Of a stretch of DNA of 64,000 bases, positions 2,315 through 62,374 are shown one piece after another. The position numbers and the translations under genes were made by a program. The first letter of the stretch is position 1; each line of letters opens with the position of its first letter. The stretch lies in IMG/VR virus record IMGVR_UViG_3300028920_000001, positions 124,001 to 188,000 of that record; one strand, written 5' to 3'. The notes under the pieces are model-generated. The model did no database searches, had not been told where the DNA came from, and was given only the letters and a program-made list of their open reading frames with translations.

Positions 2315-2680
2315 TTGAGAATGCCTTATGTACAACAATCAGACATCGAAATCACTGAAATAAATGACACTATTTTTAAAGTAAATTATCTAAATAAATT
2401 TGATGTCTTCCTTTTAAAAAATGTGATGTTTGAAATCAACCCGACTGATGCAATACTGGATTGCATCTTAGAACATAAAAACAATATAGCTTCACTTTAT
2501 GATATTTTCGATGATTATTTCTGGAGCGGTGATGATTCCTATCCTGCTTGGGGAACTAAACCAAAATCTGCATTTTTATATGAATACCTGAGAGAAGTAG
2601 CAGATATAATCGTGACTATGACTAAGTCACAGCCTTGGTATCTAGAATGGAAATTAATTAAAAATATCATGGAATCATAA
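2315..2680 (+). CDS. hypothetical protein, C-terminal motif
   Basis: 121 aa; ends LIKNIMES*; start may be ATG at 2321. Confidence 0.75.
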   Translation: MRMPYVQQSDIEITEINDTIFKVNYLNKFDVFLLKNVMFEINPTDAILDCILEHKNNIASLYDIFDDYFWSGDDSYPAWGTKPKSAFLYEYLREVADIIVTMTKSQPWYLEWKLIKNIMES

Positions 2681-2687
2681 AAAGATC

Positions 2688-3098
2688 TTATGATTCCATA
2701 ATTTCAGATACGATTACATAATCCGGTATGCAATTTGTTGGTCGTAATTGAGGGTCTTTGCTAGGATCATTCCGATGTGGACACATCGGATAAAGTTCAG
2801 TTGAGCGAAAATCGCAATCATGAAGAAAACAATAATCATACATCCAATCTGAAGCATCTGGATCTTCTTCAACTTCTAAAGTAACAATATCTAATTTACC
2901 GGATGACCAGATTTTCTTCAGGCAACGTTCAGCAGATCGTCTGGTTTCATAAACTCGAGCTCGAGCATAACGTTTGGTGAACACAGGAACAGAAACAAAT
3001 GTCTCATCATCTCCATCCCATTGAGGAGCAAATTGTGCAGCCCAATGACTAAAGTATTCATTTCTATCATTAATGATTATGGATAATTTTCGCATCAA
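2688..3098 (-). CDS. hypothetical protein, C-terminal motif
   Basis: 136 aa; ends IVSEIMES*. Confidence 0.8.
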   Translation of the reverse strand: MMRKLSIIINDRNEYFSHWAAQFAPQWDGDDETFVSVPVFTKRYARARVYETRRSAERCLKKIWSSGKLDIVTLEVEEDPDASDWMYDYCFLHDCDFRSTELYPMCPHRNDPSKDPQLRPTNCIPDYVIVSEIMES

Positions 3099-3126
3099 TC
3101 TTCCATAATATTATAACACTTAAATT

Positions 3127-3315
3127 TTATCTTTCCATTATCTCAGCTACCATAAATTCCTCTTTAGAAACTATTCTTTCTTGAGAAACGAAATTAGTAA
3201 ATTTATAGCATGTTTTACACATGACATGATATTTATCTCCAATGCATATGTAATAATCAGGTGTTCCTTCACAATTAGGAAAACCTTGTCCATAGTTGGT
3301 ACACCTAATTGACAT
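3127..3315 (-). CDS. small Cys-rich protein, C-terminal motif
   Basis: 62 aa; CxxC; ends MVAEIMER*. Confidence 0.75.
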   Translation of the reverse strand: MSIRCTNYGQGFPNCEGTPDYYICIGDKYHVMCKTCYKFTNFVSQERIVSKEEFMVAEIMER

Positions 3316-3316
3316 A

Positions 3317-4558
3317 CTACCCTTTTACACAGATGATTTGCCGAAGTTCATGCTTAATCTCTACTAAATCCTTTTGGGCTTCCATCACTGCATCAATATC
3401 TTTGTACGCACCCGGAGTTTCGTCCAATACATCCTTGTCCTTACGACATTCAATGCCTTCAGTCGCCTGACGATGATCCTTGAGAGTGAATTGCTGTCGT
3501 GCTTGAGTGCGGCTCATCAAACGACCAGCGCCATGTGAAGCACTGGTGAAAGATTCCGGATTCCCAAGACCGCTAACAATGTAACTTCGTGCGCCCATCG
3601 ATCCTGGAATTATGCCGAGCTGTCCCTTTCGAGCTGAAATTGCGCCCTTCCGAGTGACCCAGATATTATGCTTGAAGTGATTTTCTCGAGTCACGTAATT
3701 ATGATGGCAGTTCACCTCTGTAACATCAGCATCAAATTTTGGAACCAGCTTTGATTTCCGAAGAGTTTTGACGATCGTCTCCATCATGAGTTCACGATTG
3801 ACCTGAGCGTAGCGTTGAGCCCATTGAACCGCTTTCATATATTGATCGAAATGCGGCGTTCCTTCCGGAAAGAACGATAAATCCATGTTAGGCAAATCAA
3901 CATAATATTTCTTCATAACATCCTTAGCTAGGCGAATAAAATAAGTACCAATTCGATTCCCGATTCCGCGAGATCCAGAGTGAAGCACAAGCCACACCTG
4001 ATCATTCTTGTCCAGGCACACTTCGATGAAATGATTGCCTGTGCCAAGCGTTCCAAGCTGCTTTTCTGGTCCTTTATGTTCACATGCTGGATTCGATTCT
4101 TTAATCTTTGTGTAACCAGGCTTAAGTTCCTCCCAAGCCACTTCAACTGCTACTGGCGGATTCTCCCATGAACCCGGATCACGTCCTTTAGCAAATCCGT
4201 GTGGAACCGCCTTTTCGATCAAAGCTCGAATTTTAGCCAAATCCTTGAGCATGGGAGCTCGAAGAGTAGTCTGCACGGCCATCATCCCACAACCTATATC
4301 GACCCCGACCGCCGAAGGAACCACTGCATCTTGGGTTGCAATCACGGTGCCGACTGTAGCACCAATCCCAGCATGCACATCCGGCATCACGGCAACATGT
4401 TTGTAAATGAAGGGAAGATCGGCTACGTAAGCAAGTTGGGCCTCAGCATAGTGCTCTACTGGAACACCAACTGTCCATCGCTTGATGAGATGCTTGTATC
4501 CCTTGGTGATTTCAATATTTCCATCGCGGAAAGTGTGTGGAACATTTTGATCAGTCAT
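3317..4558 (-). CDS. rtcB: RtcB family RNA ligase
   Basis: MPDVHAG, VGVDIGCG, LGTLGTGNHFIE, HSGSRG, HN, IIPGSMG, SHGAGR, DETPGAYK motifs. Confidence 0.97.
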   Translation of the reverse strand: MTDQNVPHTFRDGNIEITKGYKHLIKRWTVGVPVEHYAEAQLAYVADLPFIYKHVAVMPDVHAGIGATVGTVIATQDAVVPSAVGVDIGCGMMAVQTTLRAPMLKDLAKIRALIEKAVPHGFAKGRDPGSWENPPVAVEVAWEELKPGYTKIKESNPACEHKGPEKQLGTLGTGNHFIEVCLDKNDQVWLVLHSGSRGIGNRIGTYFIRLAKDVMKKYYVDLPNMDLSFFPEGTPHFDQYMKAVQWAQRYAQVNRELMMETIVKTLRKSKLVPKFDADVTEVNCHHNYVTRENHFKHNIWVTRKGAISARKGQLGIIPGSMGARSYIVSGLGNPESFTSASHGAGRLMSRTQARQQFTLKDHRQATEGIECRKDKDVLDETPGAYKDIDAVMEAQKDLVEIKHELRQIICVKG

Positions 4559-4566
4559 GGTATCCT

Positions 4567-6395: not shown

Positions 6396-6404
6396 TAGGT
6401 GTAG

Positions 6405-6477
6405 TGCTCCCGGCCGGAATCGAACCAGCGACGCCGAGCTCTTCAGGCTCGCGCTCTACCAACTGAGCTACAGGAGC
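6405..6477 (-). tRNA. tRNA-Phe(GAA)
   Basis: Cloverleaf; CGAGC-CTGAAGA-GCTCG; 3' A-CTA. Confidence 0.92.
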
Positions 6478-6494
6478 TGGAAAACCTTGACGGG

Positions 6495-6534
6495 CGGTGT
6501 CTATGGAAGAACCGAAGCTGATCCATAGAAACCG
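6495..6534 (-). repeat. 40-nt hairpin motif copy C
   Basis: CGGTTTCTATGGA-N14-TCCATAGACACCG with C(TTCG)G tetraloop; related to 6204, 6292, 13602. Confidence 0.7.
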
Positions 6535-6551
6535 CAGCTTTGCCGCCAAGG

Positions 6552-6626
6552 TGGTGACCGCAGGGGGAATTGAACCCGCCGTTGTCGGTGTGAAAAACCG
6601 ATTTCCTACCATTAGAAGATGCGGCC
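6552..6626 (-). tRNA. tRNA-Glu(TTC)
   Basis: Cloverleaf; TCGGT-TTTTCAC-ACCGA; encoded CCA. Confidence 0.92.
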
Positions 6627-7848: not shown

Positions 7849-8085
7849 TTAACTCTCCATAATGAGAGTTACTAAAACTTCTTCGGGAGTAAGAATTATA
7901 AATCCAGACGTATAACCCGGCTTCATTTTTGCAATTCGTTCTATACACTGTTCACGGCTCGAGAAATGACAGGCATGTCTAATGCTGCTGGTATATTCAT
8001 ATTCATGCCCATCAGACCCTTTAATTAATTTTACATACCAGTTAGTCCCATATCCACCATTTTGAATCACCCATGGGTAGTTCAT
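7849..8085 (-). CDS. hypothetical protein, C-terminal motif
   Basis: Ends ILTPEEVLVTLIMES*. Confidence 0.8.
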   Translation of the reverse strand: MNYPWVIQNGGYGTNWYVKLIKGSDGHEYEYTSSIRHACHFSSREQCIERIAKMKPGYTSGFIILTPEEVLVTLIMES

Positions 8086-8828: not shown

Positions 8829-9111
8829 TTAATTCATAACCCATATGTTCAAGCTCATCATAATCATGACGTTCAGAGTCTATATACGCTCCGTCTTCAT
8901 TTATTCCAATATATTGGAAATAATTTTCATATAAACGAAGAGCTGTACGTATTTTTCCAACTTCATTATGAATTCGAACATGGCATAACACTTTAGACGG
9001 AATACTTTTAAAAATCCTTAACGCATTATCATCTGAAATTAAAACAGTTTCAGATCCGTGCTTTCTAAGCTGATCTCGAACATATTGAAATTTTGTTTCT
9101 GCAAGATTCAT
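8797..9111 (-). CDS. hypothetical protein, variant C-terminal motif
   Basis: Ends IVDYIMEEDD*. Confidence 0.75.
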   Translation of the reverse strand: MNLAETKFQYVRDQLRKHGSETVLISDDNALRIFKSIPSKVLCHVRIHNEVGKIRTALRLYENYFQYIGINEDGAYIDSERHDYDELEHMGYELIVDYIMEEDD

Positions 9112-9419
9112 TAGCTATCCATTATCAAAGCTACCATAGTTTCTTTTGGACCAAGGACTTCAAAATCTGAGAACGGATACTGTTTACTTACATCTGCTCT
9201 CCATCTTTCCAATTCAGATGTAAGAAGCATCAAAGCTTCATTTTCATCTAAGAAAAACGTAGCATTATAAATGTTACCTACAAATTTCATTCCTGTATTC
9301 GATCGTGCAAAATATACTTGCGCGCTTGGTTCATAACCACCAATTACTTTCCATTTTCCATTATATTTAATTACATAACCATAACCTTCGTCATGGGCTT
9401 TAAAATGAGCATCAGACAT
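9111..9419 (-). CDS. hypothetical protein, C-terminal motif
   Basis: Ends VLGPKETMVALIMDS*. Confidence 0.8.
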   Translation of the reverse strand: MSDAHFKAHDEGYGYVIKYNGKWKVIGGYEPSAQVYFARSNTGMKFVGNIYNATFFLDENEALMLLTSELERWRADVSKQYPFSDFEVLGPKETMVALIMDS

Positions 9420-9658
9420 TATGATTCCATCAATCTGGCTATCATAACCTCTGCTGGGTTTAAAATAGTGAAATCTGAACGTATACTATCTTCGTCAACT
9501 AACGCATCCTCAATAATTCTTTCACACACAAATTGGCTAGAAAATAAAGCTGCTTTAGCAATTTCATTTATATAATTCTCAGCAGCTCTATAACTATGTG
9601 TAAAATAACCTAGATCTTTATGCCTAATCACCCACTTATCACCCCAATTACACATCAC
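9419..9658 (-). CDS. hypothetical protein, C-terminal motif
   Basis: Ends ILNPAEVMIARLMES*. Confidence 0.8.
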   Translation of the reverse strand: MMCNWGDKWVIRHKDLGYFTHSYRAAENYINEIAKAALFSSQFVCERIIEDALVDEDSIRSDFTILNPAEVMIARLMES

Positions 9659-9921: not shown

Positions 9922-9937
9922 AGTGTAATTTACATAG

Positions 9938-11019: not shown

Positions 11020-11238
11020 TCATGTTTTCATCACCATATCAATAGTTATTTTTCCTTGAGTTTCTTCACAAGTTTCAGGACAAGGCTCACCGCCATGCAC
11101 TGGATGATAAGGTTCTTCTACCATGTAGCGTATTTGATTCTCATCGTCTCTGAGTTGCATAGTCAGCACACCACAATGCTCACATGTTGCAACTATAACT
11201 TTAGAAGTTCTTCTGATTGTTTTCCATTTGTGTTTCAT
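11020..11238 (-). CDS. small HxW/CxxC zinc protein, C-terminal motif
   Basis: MKHKW...CEHCG...C; ends TIDMVMKT*. Confidence 0.8.
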   Translation of the reverse strand: MKHKWKTIRRTSKVIVATCEHCGVLTMQLRDDENQIRYMVEEPYHPVHGGEPCPETCEETQGKITIDMVMKT

Positions 11239-11471
11239 AACGTCATGATTCGCTTAACTAATTCTTCGTCACAGTCAAGCGAAACTTTATATAAATCTAA
11301 TTCATCATCTGTGGGTGGAAAACAAGTATATTTCTCCCCACTGACATGATATCGACTTGTGACAAAATTACCACCACACCTATTACATCCAAATTTAATC
11401 TTCATCCAATGTGGAGCATGAGCTTCATCTGGTGGAATTTCTCGAGGCTGTCTCTTCCAATCATGGTTCAT
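11235..11471 (-). CDS. small HxW/CxxC zinc protein, C-terminal motif
   Basis: MNHDW...CNRCG...DC; ends LVKRIMTL*. Confidence 0.8.
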   Translation of the reverse strand: MNHDWKRQPREIPPDEAHAPHWMKIKFGCNRCGGNFVTSRYHVSGEKYTCFPPTDDELDLYKVSLDCDEELVKRIMTL

Positions 11472-14133: not shown

Positions 14134-14558
14134 TGTCTGAAAATTTCGATTTATGGCCCGAATTCGGGGAAACTGTTCTCAATGATGTAAATCTAGAAGT
14201 CGTTCCTAGAATGACGCTACCTTGTCCAGAATGCCTGAAATCCGTTGAATGGAAAAACATGAGAGCGATTTTGAATCGTTCTAATAATCAAACTGTCATC
14301 AGAGTGTGTTGCAAAGGATGTATCGCACAAAATCCGCCTCTTGATCAGACTGCACTTTCCGATGACATCAATTGGATTAGTAGATACCAATCTGATAATT
14401 ATCGAATTATAAATGCAGATCAAATTACCAAGCTCGCTATTTTAGCTAAGGAAAGACAAATCCGGACTTTAGCCACCGAACTTCTTCAGAAGGTTAGTCC
14501 TGATCAACTAAAATTTGTTATTGATCAAGCAATTGTTGAGTCAATCATGAAATCTTAG
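14133..14558 (+). CDS. hypothetical protein, C-terminal motif
   Basis: CPEC, CKGC; ends IVESIMKS*. Confidence 0.8.
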   Translation: MSENFDLWPEFGETVLNDVNLEVVPRMTLPCPECLKSVEWKNMRAILNRSNNQTVIRVCCKGCIAQNPPLDQTALSDDINWISRYQSDNYRIINADQITKLAILAKERQIRTLATELLQKVSPDQLKFVIDQAIVESIMKS

Positions 14559-14648: not shown

Positions 14649-14870
14649 TTAACTTTTCATAATACTTTCGACGATGGCTTCTTCATACACTTCATTAAAT
14701 AAATCTCGAGTTTTTTCTAATGAAAGACCTTGTTTTTTCATTTCTTTTAAAAATGCACGAACTCGAATTTTAGCAATTGAATCTAATTGATCCAGTATGG
14801 TCTTTAAATCATCACCATCCGGCAATTCTTCAGGACTGCCGTCCCAGGGAGAAAATTCTTGTATGGCCAT
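14649..14870 (-). CDS. hypothetical protein, C-terminal motif
   Basis: Ends EAIVESIMKS* (same last 9 aa as convergent 14133..14558, different codons). Confidence 0.8.
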   Translation of the reverse strand: MAIQEFSPWDGSPEELPDGDDLKTILDQLDSIAKIRVRAFLKEMKKQGLSLEKTRDLFNEVYEEAIVESIMKS

Positions 14871-25735: not shown

Positions 25736-26830
25736 TTAGTGAACCATAATTTCAAAATTATCTAATGAAAATGCATGGTTGGCGTACCTCATCGCAGCAT
25801 GATATTCTAAATCACCAATTCTCTCATAAGGATTGAAATCACCCATCACAGTTTTGAGAGCACCGATGTGTGGAAGAATATGAGCCTCTCTTTCATCATA
25901 AATTAAACCTGACTTACAAGTTTCAAAGCGTTCTTCAGAAATAATATCTTCCATTTTTTGACTGAAGAAATCATTGAAAACTTTAATCAATTCGTCTTTA
26001 GTCTGTTCACGAGTTTCTGCTCCGACTAATGGAACAATGCGATTACCCATCACGCATTCGTACGCGCCCACTCCATAAGCTAAGCCGCGCTTTTCTCGCA
26101 CTTCTTGATATAGCGGGGACTCCAGTCCTTCACTGATGCAACTGGAAATCAAACTAGTGATAGCAGCAGCACCCAATCCTAATGGCTTCCTGTGAACTAG
26201 AAATACGATTGCTTGTTCTTCTTTAGGAACAGTCTCGAGCTCTAAATCGTAGGTAGAAAATTCCACCGGATTCGGGATATCAGGTGTTTTAAATTCACCA
26301 TCAAAAGATACATCATGATTACCAACAGTGCAAATTAAACGAGGATTTTGAAATAATTCTTTAGCCAATTCAAGAGAATCTTCATAAGTGAATCCCTCAA
26401 TATCTGAACGAATTCCAATGGGTCCTCCATATTTATAATGTTTACGCATTAAATTATAATAAGTACCACCAAGTTGATGATTAAAACAAACTCCATACTC
26501 TTGCAAAACGACTTTCTTTTCGTTATCGAATTGTTCTTCAGTCCATAATTTTTCTTGTTTAGTCAATCTATCCAACATAATTTGAGAAAATTTGGACAAA
26601 CACTCATCAAGACCACGAGCCCAAAACACTACTCGATTATCAGTTGTGACAGCATTATCGACTACGTTATGCCTTCTCATTTCAGGATAAAGATCTTGAT
26701 AAGTCTTGCACATCAAATGTTCCATCAAATGACTGCAACCCCTGCGTCCAGGCTGTTCCCAGATACCGCCAGCATTGAAAACTACGCCAAAGTAACTCAT
26801 CCCGATGAAACTATCGATCTTTTTATGCAT
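25736..26830 (-). CDS. M16 (insulinase/pitrilysin family) zinc peptidase
   Basis: Inverted zinc motif HLMEH, NAVT, EKKVVLQE, LYQEVREKRGLAYGV. Confidence 0.9.
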   Translation of the reverse strand: MHKKIDSFIGMSYFGVVFNAGGIWEQPGRRGCSHLMEHLMCKTYQDLYPEMRRHNVVDNAVTTDNRVVFWARGLDECLSKFSQIMLDRLTKQEKLWTEEQFDNEKKVVLQEYGVCFNHQLGGTYYNLMRKHYKYGGPIGIRSDIEGFTYEDSLELAKELFQNPRLICTVGNHDVSFDGEFKTPDIPNPVEFSTYDLELETVPKEEQAIVFLVHRKPLGLGAAAITSLISSCISEGLESPLYQEVREKRGLAYGVGAYECVMGNRIVPLVGAETREQTKDELIKVFNDFFSQKMEDIISEERFETCKSGLIYDEREAHILPHIGALKTVMGDFNPYERIGDLEYHAAMRYANHAFSLDNFEIMVH

Positions 26831-37800: not shown

Positions 37801-38145
37801 CTAAGCCTGCATCAAGGACGCAAACTGTTCAATCAATGGCTGTAATTTATCATAGGCGTCCTGGTCGTTCGGATTCTCAAACAGGGCATCCTTGTGTTTG
37901 GCGATTTCTTGAGCGAGCTCCGTAACCTGAGTCATCTTAGCCTTTTGCTCTTCATCATCACCCGCCAGAGCTTGCCGGAATCGCTCCATGTTGGAGGCTG
38001 CGCTATCCTTCGGGAGTAGTTCATCCTTCTTGCGAAGGTACTGAGCCCTCAAGGTATCGCCTTCTCTCAAGAGATCTGGGCTTGCTTCAGGGTTCTGCTT
38101 CTGAATCTCGGACCAGGGAAGATCATGAGTTGCGGTGTCTGACAT
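37801..38145 (-). CDS. helical hypothetical protein
   Basis: 114 aa; GGAG RBS; own promoter motif. Confidence 0.8.
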   Translation of the reverse strand: MSDTATHDLPWSEIQKQNPEASPDLLREGDTLRAQYLRKKDELLPKDSAASNMERFRQALAGDDEEQKAKMTQVTELAQEIAKHKDALFENPNDQDAYDKLQPLIEQFASLMQA

Positions 38146-41158: not shown

Positions 41159-41899
41159 TTACGAATCCATGACTGTTTCAACGGTAGTGATGGACCTCGC
41201 ATGATCTAACATCTCATTAAACCACTTAAAGACATAATCTTCAGCAATCCAATCACCGAGCTTTTGTTCCAACTCAATGATTTTGGTTGGTTTATTTTCG
41301 TATGATGTACCATTTAAGATAAGATGATAAGCAACGTCCTCAGCAAACTTGAAGATTGATTCTTCGGCTAAAATTTGGTCTCGGTACAATTTATAAACTG
41401 GAACATACCTACGTTCACTTTTAAACGTAGCGGCTCCGTTTTTCTTAATCCGGACATACCCAATAATTGATTCCCGACTCCTTAAGTTTTTGACTGTAAC
41501 CTTTCCATTATTATCATCAATATAAATAATACGTGATCTTACTTTAACTGTGAATTCCCTGAATTTAGTCCCGGCATAGCTATTTTCATGAGTTGAGCCC
41601 AACACTAATTTCATATGCTTATAGCCAGGAAAGTCTTTACGAGTGACCCCTTGGCGATGAACAACTCCAGAACAAGAACCTAAACGAGCATCATGTACGC
41701 CAGTATTCTTATCCCATCCATCCCGGACCCAAATATACGGGAAGGATTTGTTAAATTCTTTTCCTTGCTCAATAGCAGCTAAAGCTCGTCTTGCCCGATC
41801 TCCAAGTCTAACCAAGATGCGAAGACCTTGGACAATCTTCTCCATCTCCTGCGGTTCAGCAGTGTCACCCAGGACTAGCTTGTCAAAATCAATCTTCAT
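41159..41899 (-). CDS. hypothetical protein, extended C-terminal motif
   Basis: Ends TVETVMDS*. Confidence 0.8.
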   Translation of the reverse strand: MKIDFDKLVLGDTAEPQEMEKIVQGLRILVRLGDRARRALAAIEQGKEFNKSFPYIWVRDGWDKNTGVHDARLGSCSGVVHRQGVTRKDFPGYKHMKLVLGSTHENSYAGTKFREFTVKVRSRIIYIDDNNGKVTVKNLRSRESIIGYVRIKKNGAATFKSERRYVPVYKLYRDQILAEESIFKFAEDVAYHLILNGTSYENKPTKIIELEQKLGDWIAEDYVFKWFNEMLDHARSITTVETVMDS

Positions 41900-42748: not shown

Positions 42749-42776
42749 TTGTACGTCGGCCAAAGCCGGACTTACG
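42749..42776 (-). promoter_or_regulatory. phage promoter-like motif
   Basis: CGTAAG-N13-GACGTACAA; upstream block overlaps stop of 42772..42987. Confidence 0.6.
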
Positions 42777-42987
42777 TGTTCATCACTTGGGCAATTTTCT
42801 CTAAATCACAATCCGGGTTTATACCATCGTCTTCTAAATCTATTGGAAGAGGATGATATGTAACTTGTCCATTCACATCACACGAAGGAGACATGGTGCA
42901 AGCACCACAACCATCACATCTATAATGAATGGTAGTTCCTATCGCACTTTTATGCGAGCCCCAGGACTTCCATTCATGGTTTTTCAT
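42772..42987 (-). CDS. small HxW/CxxC zinc protein, C-terminal motif
   Basis: NHEW...CDGCG...DC; ends KIAQVMNT*. Confidence 0.8.
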   Translation of the reverse strand: MKNHEWKSWGSHKSAIGTTIHYRCDGCGACTMSPSCDVNGQVTYHPLPIDLEDDGINPDCDLEKIAQVMNT

Positions 42988-44529: not shown

Positions 44530-45213
44530 TCATGACTCCATGAGTTTTCTTACTTGGGCTAGGTTTAAAGCTTCTTCCACATCATCTACTGTGAGAAAAT
44601 TAAGATCACTTTCATTACGATGGATGAATTTAGCTAAAATTTCGATTTCCTTAGCTCCGATATGCATAACTTTACAAATATGAATAGCATCCATTTCAAC
44701 CAGATTTGGACAAAATTTTAGAATTTCTACAAACTTCTTGCGGAAAGCTTTTTGATATTTAGGAGCCCCTTTAACAGAAAGTGTATCCCAAATTTGTTCT
44801 TTGTTTTTATCAATTCTCTGCCACTCCGTCTCTAATTGCTCAGTAAATTCTTTTACTCGATCTAGTTCGAGATAAGCTTGTTTTAAATCATCATATTGAA
44901 CATTATCTCCATGTCCATAATAATCATCGCAAATAAAACGATAGACAAATTTAGGAAGTCCATAATTAATAAAGGTTCCGTAACTTAAATCTCCAATCAA
45001 ATACTTGGAATGAAGCATTCTGATTCTTTGTTTTCCAAACACCAAGTGCACATTCGGAACGATGTACATTTGTTTATCTTCTAAAATAGTACCCTCCTGA
45101 GCCTTCTTCATTAATCGAGGCGTACCGATCACCAACTTGGCGTTATTGACAAACTCAGTCGCCATAGAGAATGCTCTAACGGTAGCTTCTCTAGTCAAAC
45201 GTTCTTTTCTCAC
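44530..45213 (-). CDS. hypothetical protein, extended C-terminal motif
   Basis: Ends QVRKLMES*. Confidence 0.8.
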   Translation of the reverse strand: MRKERLTREATVRAFSMATEFVNNAKLVIGTPRLMKKAQEGTILEDKQMYIVPNVHLVFGKQRIRMLHSKYLIGDLSYGTFINYGLPKFVYRFICDDYYGHGDNVQYDDLKQAYLELDRVKEFTEQLETEWQRIDKNKEQIWDTLSVKGAPKYQKAFRKKFVEILKFCPNLVEMDAIHICKVMHIGAKEIEILAKFIHRNESDLNFLTVDDVEEALNLAQVRKLMES

Positions 45214-45647
45214 AATTCCATCACTTTTTTAACTTGTTTAAAACGGCGTCTTGCTCGATTAATCTGTGTAAGATGTTCTCTCCACCATTTAGTCTTTTTT
45301 AGATAAGCACCAAGTGCCTCACAAATGTCATCTTCAATCCAATATTTTTGCCATTGAAGTTGAACCGGACGAAGATTTTGAACAAATGAAATACAAGGAT
45401 CTTTGGAACAAAATTCGTTAAATTTATTAACATAATCACTATGATCATTTAAAACTTTGCCAACATTGTAATTGTGATGATCTATAAATAATCCTACGTC
45501 AATTTCATCAGCTACAGAAGTTGTTGTATTAAACACATCTTCAGTATCAATCCAATAAGCAATGAAGCATAATTGTATAGAACGAACATTCGGTAATGTA
45601 GTAGACGTAATTGCTCTCAATAAGGATATAGCTTCAAGCTTGGACAT
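45210..45647 (-). CDS. hypothetical protein, C-terminal motif
   Basis: Ends QVKKVMEL*. Confidence 0.8.
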   Translation of the reverse strand: MSKLEAISLLRAITSTTLPNVRSIQLCFIAYWIDTEDVFNTTTSVADEIDVGLFIDHHNYNVGKVLNDHSDYVNKFNEFCSKDPCISFVQNLRPVQLQWQKYWIEDDICEALGAYLKKTKWWREHLTQINRARRRFKQVKKVMEL

Positions 45648-45657: not shown

Positions 45658-45685
45658 AGATACAAATAAGAAAAACGAATTTACG
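45658..45685 (-). promoter_or_regulatory. phage promoter-like motif
   Basis: CGTAAA-N13-TTTGTATCT; upstream block overlaps stop of 45681..45977. Confidence 0.6.
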
Positions 45686-45977
45686 CAGTCATTATGCTAT
45701 AGGCTATAGCTTCATTCCGATCAATTTCCTCTAATAACACAACCACTGATAATTGTTTTCTTACCATAATTACACAATTATCACATAATCCAATTATTTC
45801 AGTCTTGTCTGTAACTAATTTATACTGTCGATCCGGTTTCTTATTACATCCAATGTAAGAACATTCCTCAAGAGGATCAGCTTGGAAATTCTTAAGATCA
45901 TTAGAACCAAATGGTAAACTTAAATGTTCAATGCTCCAGGTCACACTTGCAAATTCTGGCAGCTGGCGCATTGGCAT
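45681..45977 (-). CDS. small zinc-finger protein, C-terminal motif
   Basis: CSYIGC...LCDNC; ends IAYSIMTA*. Confidence 0.75.
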   Translation of the reverse strand: MPMRQLPEFASVTWSIEHLSLPFGSNDLKNFQADPLEECSYIGCNKKPDRQYKLVTDKTEIIGLCDNCVIMVRKQLSVVVLLEEIDRNEAIAYSIMTA

Positions 45978-56483: not shown

Positions 56484-57023
56484 GTGATGGCCTGTAATGT
56501 GCTCATTCATCGGCTTAAGACGATCCATAAATCCGCTTCTAAGAAAAATTATGTGGTTAAAACTAATGCGTGTGGATGCAAGACTCATCGCATTCTAGTG
56601 GTAGACATTACACGAGGATATATCTCAGAAAAAGTAGATCTCACTCTTCAATTTGAATTATGTAAAGCTCATGCTGCAAAATTGGAACGTGAAGGGATTA
56701 ACTTTTTCAATAATCCAGAAGTAACTAATCAAACTAACAATCCTCAAGCACTAAAGGAATACTTTTCGAGTCCTGGTCATCGATATCGTCGTCATGTTTT
56801 TCGAAATTGGTATCGCATTTCCAGTATCAACTCTTATGAAATGACACCCATTGAGGATACGACTATTCCATCAAAACGAATTCAAAGACGGAATGCAGTT
56901 AAGGACCGGATCAAGCGTATGATGGACCAATCCAACACGAAGCTATTGACCGACCAGGATTGGTATGATGCTATGGAACTCGCTCTTAAAGAACATATGA
57001 TCGAACAAGTTATGAAATCCTAA
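56484..57023 (+). CDS. hypothetical protein, extended C-terminal motif
   Basis: Ends HMIEQVMKS*. Confidence 0.8.
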   Translation: MMACNVLIHRLKTIHKSASKKNYVVKTNACGCKTHRILVVDITRGYISEKVDLTLQFELCKAHAAKLEREGINFFNNPEVTNQTNNPQALKEYFSSPGHRYRRHVFRNWYRISSINSYEMTPIEDTTIPSKRIQRRNAVKDRIKRMMDQSNTKLLTDQDWYDAMELALKEHMIEQVMKS

Positions 57024-57031: not shown

Positions 57032-57253
57032 ATGTCCGTTATAGGAGGTATAAAAAGAAAACGCTGCGTAGTGTGTGGTAAACCAGCCACCCGCTTTTAT
57101 ATAGGTAAATCTGAAAAAACTGGCATTAATGATGAGTATGTTTACTTTATGAGTCCACGATGCACAGCGCATCTTCCTCCTGCGGATAATCCAATGCAGC
57201 TGAAGGAATGCTCGAGGGAAGAAATTATAACACTTGAAGTAATGGAATCATAA
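57032..57253 (+). CDS. small CxxC/CxxH zinc protein, C-terminal motif
   Basis: CVVCGKPA...RCTAH; ends ITLEVMES*. Confidence 0.8.
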   Translation: MSVIGGIKRKRCVVCGKPATRFYIGKSEKTGINDEYVYFMSPRCTAHLPPADNPMQLKECSREEIITLEVMES

Positions 57254-57254: not shown

Positions 57255-57482
57255 GTGTCACATTCTAAAAAATATATAGTTGTTAATTGTAATGGACGAG
57301 GATTACTTTATCTCAAAAGAATGGGAGAAGGAAACCGTGTATGGTCTTACAATTTAGAATTAGCACAAAAATATAGCCGTTCTCAGATTTATGAAATCAT
57401 GCAGCATAGATTGTGGGTACCGAATCGGTGGAAAATCATGAGTGAAAAAAGGGCTCTGATTTATACTATTATGAATACCTAA
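57255..57482 (+). CDS. hypothetical protein, C-terminal motif
   Basis: KKYIVV...LAQKY; ends LIYTIMNT*. Confidence 0.75.
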   Translation: MSHSKKYIVVNCNGRGLLYLKRMGEGNRVWSYNLELAQKYSRSQIYEIMQHRLWVPNRWKIMSEKRALIYTIMNT

Positions 57483-57614: not shown

Positions 57615-58307
57615 ATGACTTCGGTAACAGATTCAGAAATAGAACAAGAGATTCAATATTTAGAACGAATTAAACGGATAGATCAACAGATAGATCAAAT
57701 TGAATGCGTAAAGGATAGAATTTATAAAGACCTCGAATCGGACATTAATCAGGCTTGTGCAGAAATAGCCAAATTGATTCGAGATGCAAAACCAACCACA
57801 GCCAGTGTCATGGCTGGAGGTTCTACCATCCAATGTAGAGTCCGGGCCCTTGGAAGAATTTATCGTACTTCAGCCTGTGACGAATGGATTCGGGATGCTG
57901 ATTTATCTGTTTGGGGTAAAAATTTATTTATTGGTACCATAATTAGATTGTTTAAATTAGACAATCATTCAATCATTGACCCTCTCAGGAAAAAGGCTCT
58001 AGATTTAGCTACTGAACGAATTCCTAAAATTTCTGGGCATTTTCAATTTACCGATCAAATCAACTCATTTTTAGAAAAACCTGAAATTTATCCTGAATGT
58101 GAAAAATTAGTTAAAGAAATCTACGCCAAATTTCGGGTTGTGCTCTATCAAGGCAATCTCGAGCAAAAGAAACAGGCACACGAATTAAGAAAAGCTCTGA
58201 AGAAACTGAAACCAATTTTACTTGATGCGCTTAGAGCTGGTCTTACAGATGAAGACCTGCAGACTTTAGTTGATGAATCTCGGGTTGAGATCGTAATGAA
58301 AAGTTAA
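57615..58307 (+). CDS. hypothetical protein, extended C-terminal motif
   Basis: Ends AGLTDEDLQTLVDESRVEIVMKS*. Confidence 0.85.
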   Translation: MTSVTDSEIEQEIQYLERIKRIDQQIDQIECVKDRIYKDLESDINQACAEIAKLIRDAKPTTASVMAGGSTIQCRVRALGRIYRTSACDEWIRDADLSVWGKNLFIGTIIRLFKLDNHSIIDPLRKKALDLATERIPKISGHFQFTDQINSFLEKPEIYPECEKLVKEIYAKFRVVLYQGNLEQKKQAHELRKALKKLKPILLDALRAGLTDEDLQTLVDESRVEIVMKS

Positions 58308-58857: not shown

Positions 58858-59157
58858 TCAGTCTGTCATCAAGGCATGAACCTTGGCCAGCGGTGTTAGG
58901 GCCTCGGCTAAAACAATGGCTTCAAGATGATCTAAATTATAATCGACAATTTCTTCTTTATGTAGAGATCCCCAATCAACCCAAACATTGAATTGATTAC
59001 CGAAGGTCATGAAATGCCAATGGTCTTTACGATCAATTATATCAACCAAATAATAACGCTCATTCAGTTTAAACTCAAATTCCCAATGTGTAACTTCCTT
59101 AGTTTCACAGAGTAGAGTGGCTCGGGTGATCATTAGCTGTAGACTGGTGACGTACAA
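58858..59157 (-). CDS. hypothetical protein, C-terminal motif
   Basis: Ends KVHALMTD*; start uncertain. Confidence 0.7.
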   Translation of the reverse strand: MYVTSLQLMITRATLLCETKEVTHWEFEFKLNERYYLVDIIDRKDHWHFMTFGNQFNVWVDWGSLHKEEIVDYNLDHLEAIVLAEALTPLAKVHALMTD

Positions 59158-59465
59158 TTATGTCCAGTTTTACCATCGTAAACAAGTTTAGTACCTTGCC
59201 AAACCTGGCAGTTGGCTGATGCAAAAGTGATTTCCGTGTATGGATTGCGACTTGCAATTATATGTCCGATCAATAGCGCCCGAATTGGCCTAAAGGGCCC
59301 AATCACATATGACTCATTACGCCGAAAAGGTGACGGCTCTATTATAATCACCACTTTGCGCTTAGGATATCGGAATGTGTGATAAATAGCAACCACACAT
59401 TCCGACAGTGGACCTGCGAAGCAGATCAGGAGAAACACGCCTAGGGCAATCGGGAAACCAATCAC
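59133..59465 (-). CDS. membrane-anchored hypothetical protein
   Basis: N-terminal hydrophobic helix; coupled to vWA gene. Confidence 0.65.
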   Translation of the reverse strand: MIGFPIALGVFLLICFAGPLSECVVAIYHTFRYPKRKVVIIIEPSPFRRNESYVIGPFRPIRALLIGHIIASRNPYTEITFASANCQVWQGTKLVYDGKTGHNCTSPVYS

Positions 59466-60934
59466 ATCTTCTGTGGTCGGAGCGGAGCAACCCGTCCGAA
59501 AGTGGGCTTGTAGTTTGCATGATACTGGGTCAGGACCCAGACCACATCACATTTCGGAGCCAGCTCCTTCGGGATCTCGCCGCAGTAACCATCCGTCAAG
59601 ACGATCACACAGTCGAATTCATTCCCTAGGTGCTGCGGGAACTCCCGGAAGAAATCGTCGAAGACGGTGCCTCCGCGACCAACGACCTTGGTTCGCTTGA
59701 GGTCTTCCATGGAGTCAATCTTGGTGACTGCATTCCAGTCCGGGCTGGCATCCACCGGGACGACGTATCCCTCTGTGTTGCCAAGGCACTTGAGCTGGCT
59801 GATGCCATACACCAGATCATCGTCACTCATGCTGCCAGAGGTATCCAGCATCGCCAACCACCGTGGCTTGTGCGTGTGACGCTTGGGAAGGTACTGACGC
59901 ATCCGACCGCGAGCCGGTGTGATCCAGCGCTTGCGATAGCGCTTGTAATCGTTTTGCATGCCAGCGTCCTGCACCTTTTTCATGCAGGCACTTCGCACCA
60001 GGTCGGTGAATTTCAAGGTCGGCTTGATCAATTCGCCGAGATAGTCTTCGATTTCAGACGGGACAGTGCCTCGCATTTGCACGGCCTGTTCGGCTGCACG
60101 CATCACATCACTCTGGACTTCCTGCTTGGAGACAGCTGCGTCCATGTGATTGTCCATAGGAGCCGGCAAGCCATCTCCATAGCCCTGTCCTGAACTAGGG
60201 TCAATCGGCGAGCCACAATGCGGGCAGCACATACCCTTATGGTCACAGTTCGGCCGGTTTTTGCACGGCCCTGGAGGATTGGGCTTACCCGTCTTGGGAT
60301 CGATGGTCAGGGCAGCGCACTCTGGGCACTTACGGGGAGAATTCTCCCAGTGCCTCATGATCTCGTCGTAAATCTGCTCCGGAGGCCGGCCATATTGAGA
60401 CACATCAGCATAGCAGCAATCGCCCTTCGGAATATCACCTTGGCCATCGATGAAGGCCAGAAGGTCCTTCAGATGCCAGGGATCCCCAATATTCCCGCCC
60501 CAAAGCTTGCCCTTGCGTTGGGTCTTGACGTGATCACTTTCGATACACGAATTGACCACGTAGTCCATCGCAATATTGCATTTGCGAGGCTCTGCCGCGC
60601 GCATTCGCTTGGGATGGAGAAAGATGATGTGATAGGACTCGTGCTGCATGATGATCGGACATTCATCCCGGGACAATTTGAACAGGAATTCCGGATTCCA
60701 GTAATATCTCTTACCGTCTGTTGCAGCAGTAGTGAGTTTCTTACCACTGGGTAGGGTATCTCGCAGCTCGTGCGGCTTCGGGGCAGCCAGGCTGAACAAG
60801 AAAGGGTTGCCTCCGTTTTCGGGCTTGCGGAACATGCGCGTCATGCACGACGCCACCTTTTCCTGCAGCTCGTACATCTTTTGAGCGTCAGACACCAGAC
60901 CGTTGGGATCTGTGAGGCGGACTCCGATTTGCAT
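59462..60934 (-). CDS. DUF2201-like metallopeptidase/vWA domain protein
   Basis: TAATDG, HESYH (HExxH), NIAMDYVVN; C-terminal MIDAS DTSGSMS and GRGGT; Cys-rich insert. Confidence 0.9.
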   Translation of the reverse strand: MQIGVRLTDPNGLVSDAQKMYELQEKVASCMTRMFRKPENGGNPFLFSLAAPKPHELRDTLPSGKKLTTAATDGKRYYWNPEFLFKLSRDECPIIMQHESYHIIFLHPKRMRAAEPRKCNIAMDYVVNSCIESDHVKTQRKGKLWGGNIGDPWHLKDLLAFIDGQGDIPKGDCCYADVSQYGRPPEQIYDEIMRHWENSPRKCPECAALTIDPKTGKPNPPGPCKNRPNCDHKGMCCPHCGSPIDPSSGQGYGDGLPAPMDNHMDAAVSKQEVQSDVMRAAEQAVQMRGTVPSEIEDYLGELIKPTLKFTDLVRSACMKKVQDAGMQNDYKRYRKRWITPARGRMRQYLPKRHTHKPRWLAMLDTSGSMSDDDLVYGISQLKCLGNTEGYVVPVDASPDWNAVTKIDSMEDLKRTKVVGRGGTVFDDFFREFPQHLGNEFDCVIVLTDGYCGEIPKELAPKCDVVWVLTQYHANYKPTFGRVAPLRPQKM

Positions 60935-60953
60935 TTATGATACCTCCGATCCT

Positions 60954-60981
60954 GGATACAACGCGCGATGCCTGATTTACG
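60954..60981 (-). promoter_or_regulatory. phage promoter-like motif with shared leader
   Basis: CGTAAA-N13-GTTGTATCC followed by AGGATCGGAGGTA. Confidence 0.65.
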
Positions 60982-61005
60982 TAGCCAACCCTTCCCTAAG
61001 ACAAG

Positions 61006-61027
61006 TGAAGGGCCAAGTGGCCCTTCA
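61006..61027. terminator. hairpin upstream of vWA promoter
   Basis: TGAAGGGCC-AAGT-GGCCCTTCA. Confidence 0.4.
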
Positions 61028-61490
61028 ACTCGGTTAGCTTTGCCGGTCCCGGTTTCACACCCTATCATTCAGGGCATTAGTGATCCAGAATCTGCCCTCT
61101 CTAAGGTCATCGGGAGCTCGCCTTAGAGCAATGCAGAAACCTATTTGGCCGAATCGGCCCATCTCTTTATGGAAACGTGTCTACCAACATCTTCCATATC
61201 TTCCGTTCTAATAATCCCGATTTCACCTTTATAATTAGCCAGGATTTATTCCCCATGATGCCGTTGGGAATTCACAACATGGTGATATAAATCCATCGTA
61301 GCCGAGTAGGCTGACTATTTAGGGAAAAGTGTCTGGTTTCATTGTTTTATCCTTTGCCACGCAGAGTTTGAGTCTGCCCACCATTTCACTAACTAACTTT
61401 TCTACTTAGGTGTTTTTCCATCTGTTGGGCCATCGTGGTTTCACCCAAAAGCGGAAAAGAACCGCAGCCTTGAAGGCATTCTAAACATGC

Positions 61491-61952
61491 TTATTGCTTC
61501 ATAATGTCCATAACCGCACGCATTCCTATTTTCTTAGCGAGAATGAGAGCGGATTTTCGCACTTTCTCCGGTCTGTTTCTTCGGAAGGTCTTCTTATACT
61601 GACAATGACCCGTCCAGTCGACCCCACCTTCCTCGTCTATAGGAAGGACATGAACACTTACTTTCTGTTTATCAAAATTTACAGTGAATAAATACCGATT
61701 TTCGTCCTTTTCAATTACGGCTCGATATCCCATCTGAATTCCACCAGGGAAAGAAGGAGGAGCCAGAACCAATTTTTCAATAATAATCACCCCGTAAGTA
61801 GGACGAGTCAGGACGCTAAGATAGGTTTGCCCAATCTCTTCCGCCCACTTGTCACCCTTTCCTGCCATATTAGATGTTACGACTCGTAGACCGAGACTTA
61901 CATTGTGTGATTCAGATACCTCAAGATTATTCCATATTTTGAGATTAACCAT
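61491..61952 (-). CDS. hypothetical protein, C-terminal motif
   Basis: Ends AVMDIMKQ*. Confidence 0.75.
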   Translation of the reverse strand: MVNLKIWNNLEVSESHNVSLGLRVVTSNMAGKGDKWAEEIGQTYLSVLTRPTYGVIIIEKLVLAPPSFPGGIQMGYRAVIEKDENRYLFTVNFDKQKVSVHVLPIDEEGGVDWTGHCQYKKTFRRNRPEKVRKSALILAKKIGMRAVMDIMKQ

Positions 61953-62374
61953 TACATACTCATAATTGCATTAACATGATCATGATTGATGAGATTTTCA
62001 ATTTCATCAGCGATTCTTAAGAGACAATCTCTTTCAAGCCAAAACCCATTTCGATCACCTTTTCTTTTGATGATCTGTAGATAGTATTCATTATAAAATA
62101 ATTCATTCTCCTGAGAATCATTTAAATGAGGAGCGTCAACTTTAATCCGAGGACCTCTGGTCTCTGAATTATCATATAGAATACCGTAAGCTTTTTTATT
62201 CACAGCAGTCCGAATTGTCGAAATAAATTCCTGAGCTCGTTCTATTTCGAAACGAAATTTATAATCAGGATGGCCAATACTAATTTGAATATAATCTCCC
62301 ATCCACAATACTTCCATTCGACCATAATCCCAGTGCTCCCAAGAAGCACCAACAGTCTTGTCGATGGAAGGCAT
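61952..62374 (-). CDS. hypothetical protein, C-terminal motif
   Basis: Ends HVNAIMSM*. Confidence 0.75.
   Translation of the reverse strand: MPSIDKTVGASWEHWDYGRMEVLWMGDYIQISIGHPDYKFRFEIERAQEFISTIRTAVNKKAYGILYDNSETRGPRIKVDAPHLNDSQENELFYNEYYLQIIKRKGDRNGFWLERDCLLRIADEIENLINHDHVNAIMSM

Follow-up and report, generated by a model that had tools for sequence, protein, structure and literature searches.

We describe a short C-terminal motif that is shared by many otherwise unrelated proteins of an uncultured huge phage. The motif was studied in a stretch of 64,000 nucleotides (nt), hereafter the window, which corresponds to positions 124,001-188,000 of the viral contig IMGVR_UViG_3300028920_000001 (426,960 bp). 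The proteins end with a hydrophobic pattern whose methionine is exactly third from the C-terminus, and we will call this ending the tag. The motif is real and far beyond chance, and selection keeps it at the protein level on at least 129 unrelated small proteins of this ~427-kb phage and its close relatives. Judged from sequence, this is a strong finding of a new signal-like motif in a new setting, and the tag looks like a protein address label of a kind that is undescribed for phages. The window has a G+C content of 41% and has no near DNA match in the phage reference collection. An ENA contig of 428,825 bp is an independent assembly of the same genome. By walking, we read the contig from 68 to 235 kb (~167 of 427 kb, or ~40%), and all of the overlaps were conflict-free.

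A mechanical scan of the six frames of the window gave 304 stop-to-stop open reading frames (ORFs) of at least 60 amino acids (aa). Methionine is at position -3 (third from the stop) in 70 of these, and the runner-up residue is serine, with 26. Using codon-usage scoring and dynamic programming, we called 136 genes in the window, of which 64 have methionine at -3. Since methionine makes up 2.7% of residues in the background, the binomial probability of this is ~4e-62. Three of the 64 are probably chance: the genes ending at 10075 (...ALNMPL), 25736 (an M16 peptidase, ...FEIMVH), and 62406 (an HNH endonuclease, ...VNMKG). A preliminary description of this DNA had counted 60 of about 125 coding sequences with methionine in this position and only a handful expected by chance. 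Given that three of our 64 are probably chance, that count was essentially right. The six frames hold 52 matches to [VI]xx[VILF]M[EDKNQT]x-stop, versus a mean of 1.5 (maximum 5) in 50 shuffles. Called gene ends account for 46 of the 52 matches.

The residue preferences around the methionine also agree with those first described. Among the 64 genes, position -7 is V (36) or I (17), position -4 is V (27), I (25), or L (7), position -2 is E (23), D (9), K (9), T (6), N (5), or Q (4), and position -1 is S in 27. There is a fainter signal upstream (hydrophobic at -8, E at -10, D/E at -11, and P/C at -12). The consensus is [P/S/T/C]-x-[D/E]-E-h-h-[V/I]-x-x-[V/I/L]-M-[E/D/N/K/T]-[S]-COOH, where h is hydrophobic. 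The tag holds about 12-14 bits of information, which is too little for a match to it alone to be significant against 1.8 billion proteins. The tag sites in the window, with their strands and genes, are as follows (A1 and A2 are two protein families that are discussed below):

2657..2680 (+): tag IKNIMES and stop; gene 2321-2680, 119 aa; convergent end
2688..2711 (-): tag VSEIMES and stop; gene 2688-3095, 135 aa; convergent end; forms hairpin 2669-2699 with the IKNIMES tag of gene 2321-2680
3127..3150 (-): tag VAEIMER; gene 3127-3315, 62 aa
7849..7872 (-): tag VTLIMES; gene 7849-8085, 78 aa; A1 family, modeled
9111..9134 (-): tag VALIMDS; gene 9111-9419, 102 aa; A1 family; homologs at 49% and 38% identity keep the tag
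9419..9442 (-): tag IARLMES; gene 9419-9655, 78 aa
9655..9678 (-): tag LLSVMES (L at -7); gene 9655-9921, 88 aa
11020..11043 (-): tag IDMVMKT; gene 11020-11238, 72 aa, zinc-ribbon-like
11235..11258 (-): tag VKRIMTL; gene 11235-11471, 78 aa
11468..11491 (-): second-class tail PKKIITK and stop; gene 11468-11662, 64 aa
11659..11682 (-): hybrid tail IKKIMTR; gene 11659-11841, 60 aa
11838..11861 (-): tag IQDIMQL; gene 11838-12284, 148 aa
12956..12979 (-): tag VWLVMEI; gene 12956-13270, 104 aa
13270..13293 (-): tag IARFMEE; gene 13270-13479, 69 aa
14110..14133 (+): tag VSKVMES; gene 13777-14133, 118 aa
14535..14558 (+): tag VESIMKS; gene 14133-14558, 141 aa; convergent end
14649..14672 (-): tag VESIMKS; gene 14649-14870, 73 aa; convergent end; same peptide as at 14535..14558, with different codons
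14870..14893 (-): tag VYKVMEA; gene 14870-15391, 173 aa
20645..20668 (+): tag IERIMQL; gene 20417-20668, 83 aa
20944..20967 (+): tag IGEVMES; gene 20665-20967, 100 aa
22296..22319 (-): tag VYKIMNS; gene 22296-22583, 95 aa
22760..22783 (-): tag VRLIMEE; gene 22760-22957, 65 aa
22947..22970 (-): variant tag IREIHES (His for Met); gene 22947-23255, 102 aa
24805..24828 (-): tag VATLMEM; gene 24805-25104, 99 aa
25101..25124 (-): tag VAEVMEE; gene 25101-25406, 101 aa
25403..25426 (-): tag VAKVMQS; gene 25403-25603, 66 aa
28340..28363 (-): tag VQKVMDT; gene 28340-28924, 194 aa
29261..29284 (-): tag IYKVMDD; gene 29261-29581, 106 aa
31538..31561 (-): tag VLSVMNL; gene 31538-31882, 114 aa
32292..32315 (-): weaker tag LLEVMGL; gene 32292-32552, 86 aa
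33484..33507 (-): tag VERIMTD; gene 33484-33936, 150 aa
33933..33956 (-): tag VSHVMES; gene 33933-34367, 144 aa; tagged member of the A2 family
37801..37824 (-): weaker tag FASLMQA; gene 37801-38145, 114 aa
38184..38207 (-): variant tag VAKIHHS (His at -3); gene 38184-38453, 89 aa
38455..38478 (-): weaker tag AKNIMKS; gene 38455-39045, 196 aa
39103..39126 (-): tag VSTVMDE; gene 39103-40200, 365 aa; identical in the 83%-identical ortholog P0002
40197..40220 (-): weaker tag VKVTMEQ; gene 40197-40883, 228 aa; orthologs keep the tag with synonymous changes
41159..41182 (-): tag VETVMDS; gene 41159-41899, 246 aa; kept in orthologs at 81-95% identity
41896..41919 (-): tag VEDVMDS; gene 41896-42180, 94 aa; L016 has V to I at -4
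42772..42795 (-): tag IAQVMNT; gene 42772-42987, 71 aa; VKQIMES in a 65%-identity ortholog
44530..44553 (-): tag VRKLMES; gene 44530-45213, 227 aa; VRKIMES in P0023 (81%)
45210..45233 (-): tag VKKVMEL; gene 45210-45647, 145 aa; A2 family, modeled as all-alpha
45681..45704 (-): weaker tag AYSIMTA; gene 45681-45977, 98 aa
46664..46687 (+): tag IIQIMLS; gene 46397-46687, 96 aa
47815..47838 (-): tag IQQIMDE; gene 47815-48048, 77 aa
48045..48068 (-): tag VSQVMET; gene 48045-48281, 78 aa
48565..48588 (-): tag VYRLMAE; gene 48565-48831, 88 aa
48828..48851 (-): tag VNKVMDS; gene 48828-49058, 76 aa
49055..49078 (-): tag VNRIMNS; gene 49055-49258, 67 aa
49803..49826 (-): tag VSSIMRS; gene 49803-50036, 77 aa
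50033..50056 (-): weaker tag MLQVMTA; gene 50033-50302, 89 aa
51052..51075 (-): tag VRKVMEA; gene 51052-51423, 123 aa
51420..51443 (-): tag IHEVMDP; gene 51420-51770, 116 aa
51767..51790 (-): weaker tag VKETMEK; gene 51767-52324, 185 aa
52324..52347 (-): tag IRQLMVS; gene 52324-52521, 65 aa
52518..52541 (-): tag IEGVMKS; gene 52518-53102, 194 aa
53973..53996 (-): weaker tag CEEIMES; gene 53973-54575, 200 aa
54625..54648 (-): variant tag IGDILET (Leu at -3); gene 54625-55272, 215 aa
57000..57023 (+): tag IEQVMKS; gene 56487-57023, 178 aa
57230..57253 (+): weaker tag TLEVMES; gene 57071-57253, 60 aa
57459..57482 (+): tag IYTIMNT; gene 57321-57482, 53 aa
58284..58307 (+): tag VEIVMKS; gene 57615-58307, 230 aa
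58858..58881 (-): tag VHALMTD; gene 58858-59133, 91 aa
61491..61514 (-): tag VMDIMKQ; gene 61491-61868, 125 aa
61952..61975 (-): tag VNAIMSM; gene 61952-62374, 140 aa

Across the 144 kb from 68 to 212.4 kb of the contig, 129 of the 329 called genes (~40%) have methionine at -3. A strict core, which we define as [VI]xx[VILF]M two residues before the C-terminus, is present in 105 of these. The register is exact: in this low-GC part, the core pattern lies at an offset of two from the end in 105 genes and at offsets of three, four, and six in one gene each, and it is found at least 12 residues inside proteins at just 21 places in 41,860 residues. If position -7 is V or I and position -4 is V, I, L, or F, then residue -3 is Met in 105 cases, His in 4, Leu in 3, and something else in 7 altogether; at internal sites with the same context, Met makes up only 1.8%. 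The hydrophobic positions of the tag are -8, -7, -4, and -3. In the 129 tags, position -1 is S in 76, position -2 is E, D, N, T, K, or Q in 108, and 48 have [V/I]-M-E in their last residues. These results do not depend on our gene caller, since 12 of 45 genes are tagged if the database's gene calls are used for one 20-kb stretch.

Selection acts on the peptide and not on the DNA, as the preliminary description had proposed. In the window, the codons for V/I at -7, I at -4, and E/D/K at -2 follow the usage of the genome. All six serine codons are used for the terminal residue (TCA 9, TCG 7, AGT 4, AGC 3, TCT 3, and TCC 1), as are all three stop codons (TAA 30, TGA 29, and TAG 5 in the 64 genes). 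The excess of TCA and TCG is due to ATGA or GTGA overlaps with the start of the next gene. Valine at -4 favors GTG (18/27), and the same GTG excess is seen in valines before internal ATG codons (11/27), so this is a codon-pair effect on valine before ATG in general. Methionine is fixed at -3 whether the next start overlaps by 4 nt, overlaps by 1 nt, or follows a gap of up to 364 nt. Strict tags number 11 of 11 at ends that face the other strand, and 16 of 22 before gaps of over 15 nt. The convergent ends at 2680/2688 and 14558/14649, which had been singled out earlier, carry the motif on both sides. Positions after the stop are not conserved, and the next base after the stop is no different in tagged genes. 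Arrays of genes mix tagged and untagged members, and the other genes carry ordinary GGAG/GAGG ribosome-binding sites.

Could the motif instead work at the level of RNA or DNA and be translated only incidentally? It might then promote ribosome binding or coupling to the next gene, form a terminator hairpin, or mark a recombination or cassette boundary. A 1- or 4-nt overlap with the next start in 26 of the 64 tagged genes, the weak resemblance of ATGGA(G) to a Shine-Dalgarno sequence, the preferences for GTG at V(-4) and for TCA/TCG at S(-1), and a perfect 12-bp hairpin in one convergent pair of tags are all consistent with this. But the motif is undiminished where there is no following gene, its position is set by the stop codon instead of the next start, third codon positions are free, and V and I interchange at -7 and -4. 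Also, the GTG bias is explained by the general effect, there are ordinary ribosome-binding sites elsewhere and no conservation past the stop, and the hairpin occurs in one pair only. We consider an element of this kind to be largely refuted and very improbable. A Shine-Dalgarno or coupling element in particular fails because the motif does not track the downstream start and synonymous sites are not conserved. We also rejected an intrinsic terminator: the sole hairpin (2669-2699) is AT-rich and is made from two convergent tags, and the positions after the stop are unconserved. This hairpin (7-nt loop, -13.5 kcal/mol, z -3.8) exists because two convergent genes both end with ...IMES, written ATGGAATCATAA; it may also serve as a bidirectional terminator.

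Only lineage-specific orphan proteins, with bodies that are otherwise unrelated, carry the tag. Tagged proteins range from 53 to 365 aa and are mostly soluble, with a membrane-like segment in 4 of 105. All-against-all BLAST finds just a few small paralog groups, and after removing the last 12 aa, phmmer joins only four small clusters among 181 proteins. Together with two different predicted folds (see below), this bears out the earlier claim of unrelated bodies, and we rejected hidden paralogy, a single family, or a shared domain as explanations. Twenty tagged proteins gave no credible hit in Pfam, and the ten largest of those gave no hit in PHROGs. None of the Pfam-annotated genes seen in the part of the contig that we read has a strict tag. 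Genes with a recognizable domain and without a strict tag include EF-Tu, RtcB, a helicase, ligases, Ro60/TROVE, PTH2, a methyltransferase, a decarboxylase, a lyase, NUDIX proteins, phosphoesterases, homing endonucleases, AAA+ proteins, and DUF2201.

The motif is predicted to form an amphipathic terminal helix of ~12 residues, often with a P/S/T/C cap and an acidic start. An AlphaFold2 model of an A1 protein (78 aa) has a beta3-alpha-beta-alpha fold, with a predicted local distance difference test score (pLDDT) of 81 and a predicted template modeling score (pTM) of 0.70. The tag is the last helix, with a pLDDT of ~88. The model of an A2 protein (145 aa) is all-alpha (pLDDT 82), and the tag ends a helix of 25 residues whose last block has a pLDDT of 72. 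Thus, the tag is modeled as part of the last helix in both cases, which fits the terminal amphipathic helix that was first proposed from residue spacing. Using Foldseek, we found no match to either model with E < 0.1 in the PDB or BFVD.

The A2 family has four paralogs. Two of them end with ...FKQVKKVMEL and ...NVVSHVMES, and the other two lack these last 7-8 residues and stop where the shared body does. As far as these sequences indicate, the tag behaves as a module that paralogs have gained or lost. These results bear on whether the helix could do without any common receptor. It might be a structural or self-association helix (for capping or dimerization) that derives from one massively duplicated ancestral gene, or that was repeatedly reinvented to stabilize young proteins. 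The A1 model makes the terminal helix a confident part of a compact 78-aa domain, the A1 family retains the helix at 38% identity, and tagged genes form tandem arrays that include recognizable small paralog groups, all of which favor this explanation. But the bodies differ in both length (53-365 aa) and predicted fold, only some paralogs of one family have the tag, and packing of a helix would require neither a near-invariant methionine nor an exact distance of two residues from the end across different folds. We think that a receptor-less helix is unlikely.

The tag is conserved as a peptide in relatives. Orthologs from other samples (65-95% identity) show V/I/L swaps and changes from N-T to E-S, and the methionine is never lost. 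For instance, the tag is identical in orthologs at 83% and 93% overall identity, is changed from V to I at -4 in an ortholog from L016 (88% overall identity), and is changed from L to I at -4 in the P0023 ortholog (81%). At 65% identity, EKIAQVMNT becomes ERVKQIMES; all four of the changed positions (-7, -4, -2, and -1) remain within the allowed class. More distantly, a profile of the A1 family has only seven hits among 1.84 billion representative proteins. The homologs at 49% and 38% identity end with ...MIALIMES and ...LVALIMED, and nowhere are they better conserved than in the tag. The gene that adjoins the 38%-identity homolog ends with ...LVELVMRT. We disregarded a match of the A1 profile to the 1584-aa protein P0020, which was not confirmed (hhalign probability of 8%).

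A tagged gene also seems to come and go between relatives. L017 (~677-907) and L018 (~1198-1428), which are 81%-identical relatives, have an extra 77-codon ORF that ends with ...CEKIMTE. It lies between the orthologs of window genes 42772-42987 and 42395-42694, where the window has a gap of 77 nt. This implies that a gene with Met(-3) was gained or lost.

The preliminary description called the tag genome-wide. It does extend beyond the window, to the 129 of 329 genes at 68-212.4 kb, but this claim needs to be narrowed: ~167 of 427 kb was read, and none of the 37 genes in a GC-rich island from 212.4 to ~226.5 kb (G+C of 53-58%) is tagged. The island (14 kb; L024 and L108) has ~37 small genes, mostly on the plus strand, and it sits within tagged sequence with a G+C of 35-49%, as at 68-212.4 kb. 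The island may be a recent acquisition. Past ~227 kb, the G+C drops again and tags return. The relatives L006 and L007 have a G+C of 53%.

Among the 171 genes of eight large-phage loci (the helicase-linked relatives L005-L007, and L009-L013), there are no strict motifs, six genes have Met(-3), and there are no homologs of the tagged genes. L005-L007 share the helicase cluster at 50-74% identity. On this evidence, the tag appears to be specific to the lineage of one ~427-kb phage and its close relatives.

Some tags vary at the methionine itself, and the near-variants that were pointed out earlier (IHES, ILET, IMEEDD, and LFDE) do exist among the called genes. Four otherwise canonical tags have His for Met at -3: EIHES, KIHHS, EVHSS, and EVHDI, at 22947-22970 (-) and 38184-38207 (-) in the window and at 91192 and 113444 in the contig. 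Three tags have Leu. The alternation of Met and His might hint at a metal- or pocket-specific contact. In addition, six tag-like endings (such as IVQVMQS-stop) are on ORFs of only 7-25 codons. They might have arisen by chance, be left over from tagged genes that decayed, or belong to very small genes:

25600 (-), 57564 (-), 6817 (+), 11009 (+), 17756 (-), 22286 (+): tag-like endings of short ORFs in the window

There is also a second class of tail, [P/T/A]-[K/R]-K-I-[I/V/F/M]-[T/V]-[K/R/Q]-COOH. It is present in nine genes, with unrelated bodies, varied codons, and all three stops. These are located at 11468-11491 (-) and 11659-11682 (-) in the window and at 72.8-77.6 kb (L107) and ~115.0 kb (L014) in the contig. 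The hybrid KKIMTR (gene 11659-11841) bridges this tail and the Met tag. Given the second class, C-terminal codes look like a habit of this genome.

What might the tag do? It is locked to the free C-terminus, it is on proteins with different folds, it is present or absent within one paralog family, and its carriers include no known enzymes. Together, these make an address label the most likely function. We propose that the motif is a gene-encoded C-terminal tag, an amphipathic helix of ~12 residues that ends two mostly polar residues past the near-invariant methionine, and that one common partner, encoded by the phage or its host, reads the terminal carboxylate and the M/V/I face. The partner would handle the whole class of orphans alike. 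We put the probability of a common-receptor address tag at roughly 0.45. By analogy, a receptor that grips the alpha-carboxylate, as proteases or unfoldases, TPR modules, and PDZ modules do, would account for the exact distance of two residues from the end, and so would an event at the stop codon. In its broadest form, which we hold with the same reserve, this would be a proteome-wide C-terminal sorting code, with a dedicated receptor for h-x-x-h-M-x-x-COOH and perhaps a second one for PKKIITK-COOH, that sends over 100 orphan "effectors" to timed destruction, into the capsid, or to a compartment built by the phage.

Our leading guess, which is unproven, is that the partner feeds tagged proteins to a protease or unfoldase, so that early or accessory proteins are removed on time. 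We favor timed proteolysis because the tagged genes have among them the genes for two metallopeptidases, both apparently active as judged from their sequences, and for an AAA+ ATPase, and because the carriers seem too numerous to be virion cargo. The speculative candidates for a reader are all untagged:

25736..26830 (-): M16 metallopeptidase, candidate reader or processor, with an intact HLMEH site
59462..60934 (-): DUF2201 putative metallopeptidase with a VWA-like domain, with HESYH
63265..64000, running on to ~64374 (-): AAA+ ATPase, 369 aa

Two tagged genes and an HNH endonuclease (61491-63140 (-)) lie between the DUF2201/VWA protein and the AAA+ ATPase, which resemble a MoxR/VWA-like pair. 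By sequence, the AAA+ ATPase has no relative in the PDB, and the M16 protein has weak ones only.

Several points weigh against a common receptor or against proteolysis. We identified no receptor, and the peptidases and the AAA+ ATPase are tied to the tag by proximity only. The terminal helix of the A1 model is confident (pLDDT ~88), so it may pack on its own domain instead of being available to a partner. With its two polar residues at the end, the tag is unlike known bacterial C-terminal degrons (ssrA-type or Tsp/PDZ ligands). The host could not be inferred, as the phage's EF-Tu is 57-63% identical to those of bacteria from many phyla. Finally, the evidence covers ~167 of 427 kb, and this sample included no module of structural genes.

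An event at the stop codon would be another explanation for the exact register. When a stop codon is in the A site of the ribosome, residues -1 to -8 of the nascent chain lie in the upper exit tunnel, where the motif might modulate release or recycling, possibly with translation factors from the phage; the register would then be the distance from the stop codon. The phage does have an unusual translation toolkit (EF-Tu, 12 tRNAs, PTH2, and RtcB), a relative has a release-factor-like gene, and TAG stops are somewhat rarer in tagged genes (16/124 versus 41/200, P = 0.10). Against this, an amphipathic helix with an N-cap that reaches to -12 is unlike known arrest peptides, stalling on 40% of genes would be costly, the base after the stop is no different, and the second tail, PKKIITK, has quite different chemistry. 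We judge an effect on the nascent chain to be improbable.

Alternatively, the tag might be a signal for capsid loading or ejection, which the preliminary description had put first among its options, ahead of a timed degron and a helix for docking to a scaffold. The tag would dock proteins inside the procapsid (at the shell, the scaffold, or the prohead protease), and small effectors would be injected along with the DNA. The carriers are effector-like, in that they are small, soluble, and lineage-specific orphans, and the [V/I]-M-E in 48 of the 129 tags is similar to the (L/I)-x-E site of T4-type prohead proteases. Short terminal peptides direct the internal proteins of phage T4 and the cargo of encapsulins into shells with the HK97 fold, and one such T4 protein, IPI*, is an injected anti-restriction protein. 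On the other hand, at least 129 different cargos would far exceed any described virion, and the known signals for capsids work without a fixed distance from the C-terminus. Also, the tagged genes apparently share operons with tRNAs, RNA-repair genes, and helicase genes instead of structural genes, and no capsid, scaffold, or prohead-protease genes were seen in the 167 kb that we read. We consider capsid loading to be quite unlikely.

The tag marks ~40% of the genes that we read, and these are exactly the genes that nobody can annotate. A cornerstone of cell biology is the use of short terminal signals, such as secretion signals, peroxisomal signals, endoplasmic reticulum retrieval signals, and degrons, through which many unrelated proteins meet the same fate. 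To our knowledge, only a few small-scale cases of short terminal sorting signals are known in phages. In jumbo phages that do sort their proteins, searches for linear signals failed (PMC11087766). If one receptor reads the tag, then there is a handle on over 100 orphan proteins as a class, which would share a pathway despite differing functions, as well as a concrete route to the receptor. The tag would also be portable, at 7-12 residues, and perhaps useful for engineered cargo loading or conditional degradation. A sorting code, if true, would be the first system of linear signals, for sorting or for degradation, to be described for a virus of bacteria. More broadly, scans for position-locked C-terminal motifs can expose organization in viral dark matter.

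The tagged genes are set among a sizeable toolkit for translation and RNA repair, with 12 tRNAs, EF-Tu, RtcB, an RNA ligase, and a KH-domain protein. Just beyond the window are a Ro60/TROVE protein and a PTH2 peptidyl-tRNA hydrolase (contig ~97.9-99.7 kb and ~84.0 kb). Besides the toolkit, the recognizable proteins in the window are a superfamily-2 helicase, the M16 metallopeptidase, the DUF2201 metallopeptidase/VWA protein, the AAA+ ATPase, and LAGLIDADG and HNH homing endonucleases. The toolkit is located as follows:

842-1024, 6404-6626, 9937-10084, 10778-10933, 13686-13761, 15483-15821: stretches with tRNAs from the set of 12
1069-2247, 3317-4558, 8085-8804, 21250-21783: stretches encoding the EF-Tu, RtcB, RNA ligase, and KH-domain set

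Several homing endonucleases (LAGLIDADG, HNH, and GIY-YIG) are encoded at 35909-36994 (+) and 62406-63140 (-) in the window and at ~97.1-97.9 kb and 88.5-89.5 kb in the contig. The 81%-identical relatives L017 and L018 have an HNH relative at a different site and on the other strand, a sign of mobility. A cluster of repeat proteins at 17046-18266 (-) adjoins the helicase. It has zinc-ribbon-like units of ~30 aa (DUF4379-like) and is kept in the helicase-linked relatives L005-L007.

Upstream of some genes that come after a gap, TGTA (often TGTAAAT or TGTATAT) starts ~13 nt before the start codon, and there is no Shine-Dalgarno sequence. In the window, TGTA is at exactly -13 in 10 of 67 such genes. 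A related sequence, YGTAAAT, is often at or just past the preceding stop. The upstream TGTA is a candidate phage promoter or short-leader signal. Examples are before these starts:

809 (-), 2321 (+), 6134 (-), 9921 (-), 13479 (-), 13777 (+), 30268 (-), 32803 (-), 35909 (+), 63140 (-): TGTA-type upstream signal

Our literature searches turned up no description of such a C-terminal motif, and the preliminary description likewise knew of no phage system like this. The tag lacks a defining feature of each of four known systems: T4 capsid targeting, encapsulin cargo loading, Dot/Icm secretion, and bacterial degrons. As in T4, a short terminal peptide is found on unrelated small phage proteins and might have one assembly partner, some T4 cargos are injected anti-defense effectors, and the T4 protease site resembles the end of many tags. 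But the T4 signal is N-terminal, ~10 residues long, removed by the prohead protease, and present on a handful of proteins, whereas the tag is at the extreme C-terminus, is locked to the last residue, and is on over 100 proteins. Encapsulin cargo-loading peptides are C-terminal, have ~10 residues, and dock unrelated cargo inside a shell with the HK97 fold. Unlike the tag, which is a predicted helix with methionine, they are rich in Gly, Ser, and Leu, extended, and usually found on one to a few cargos that are encoded beside the shell gene. The tag's consensus differs from theirs, and there was no shell-like Pfam hit among the called genes of the loci that we read.

Viruses offer two other comparisons. 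The ankyrin/PRANC F-box-like proteins of poxviruses also join variable target-binding bodies to one shared C-terminal element that leads into a common cellular machine. However, these elements are domains of 30-50 residues on clear paralogs from eukaryotic viruses, while the tag has 7-12 residues and is on non-homologous phage bodies. In the PicA pathway of the Chimalliviridae, a receptor encoded by the phage routes a subset of jumbo-phage proteins into the phage nucleus. No conserved N- or C-terminal signal was found for this import, and recognition is via a surface patch (PMC11087766); the tag, in contrast, is a linear C-terminal motif. In the part of the contig that we read, no homolog of chimallin or PicA was seen, although no search was aimed at them.

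Bacterial C-terminal degrons (ssrA, ClpX C-motifs, Tsp/PDZ, and FtsH) are portable to unrelated proteins and are read with the free alpha-carboxylate, which would explain the exact register. The PKKIITK tail loosely resembles the basic-plus-hydrophobic C-motif 2 of ClpX. But known degrons are non-polar in the last one to three positions, while the tag usually ends with polar E/D/N-S (see the counts at -1 and -2 above) and has its hydrophobic residues at -3, -4, and -7. Also, ssrA is added by transfer-messenger RNA, and the phage's tag is written in the gene. The effectors of Dot/Icm (type IVB) secretion systems are hundreds of unrelated, lineage-specific proteins with a loose C-terminal signal that is read by one coupling complex. 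The tag has hydrophobic residues at -3 and -4 (M and V/I/L) and upstream acids (E at -10 and D/E at -11) as those signals do, which is a resemblance only. The Dot/Icm signal is degenerate, bacterial, and without a strict register, whereas the tag is sharp, Met-specific, predicted to be helical, and encoded by a phage, and nothing suggests a secretion system. By analogy, then, the Dot/Icm signal is nearest to the tag in logic and scale, the T4 capsid targeting sequence and the encapsulin cargo peptides are nearest in biological setting, and the bacterial C-terminal degrons are nearest in their dependence on a free C-terminus.

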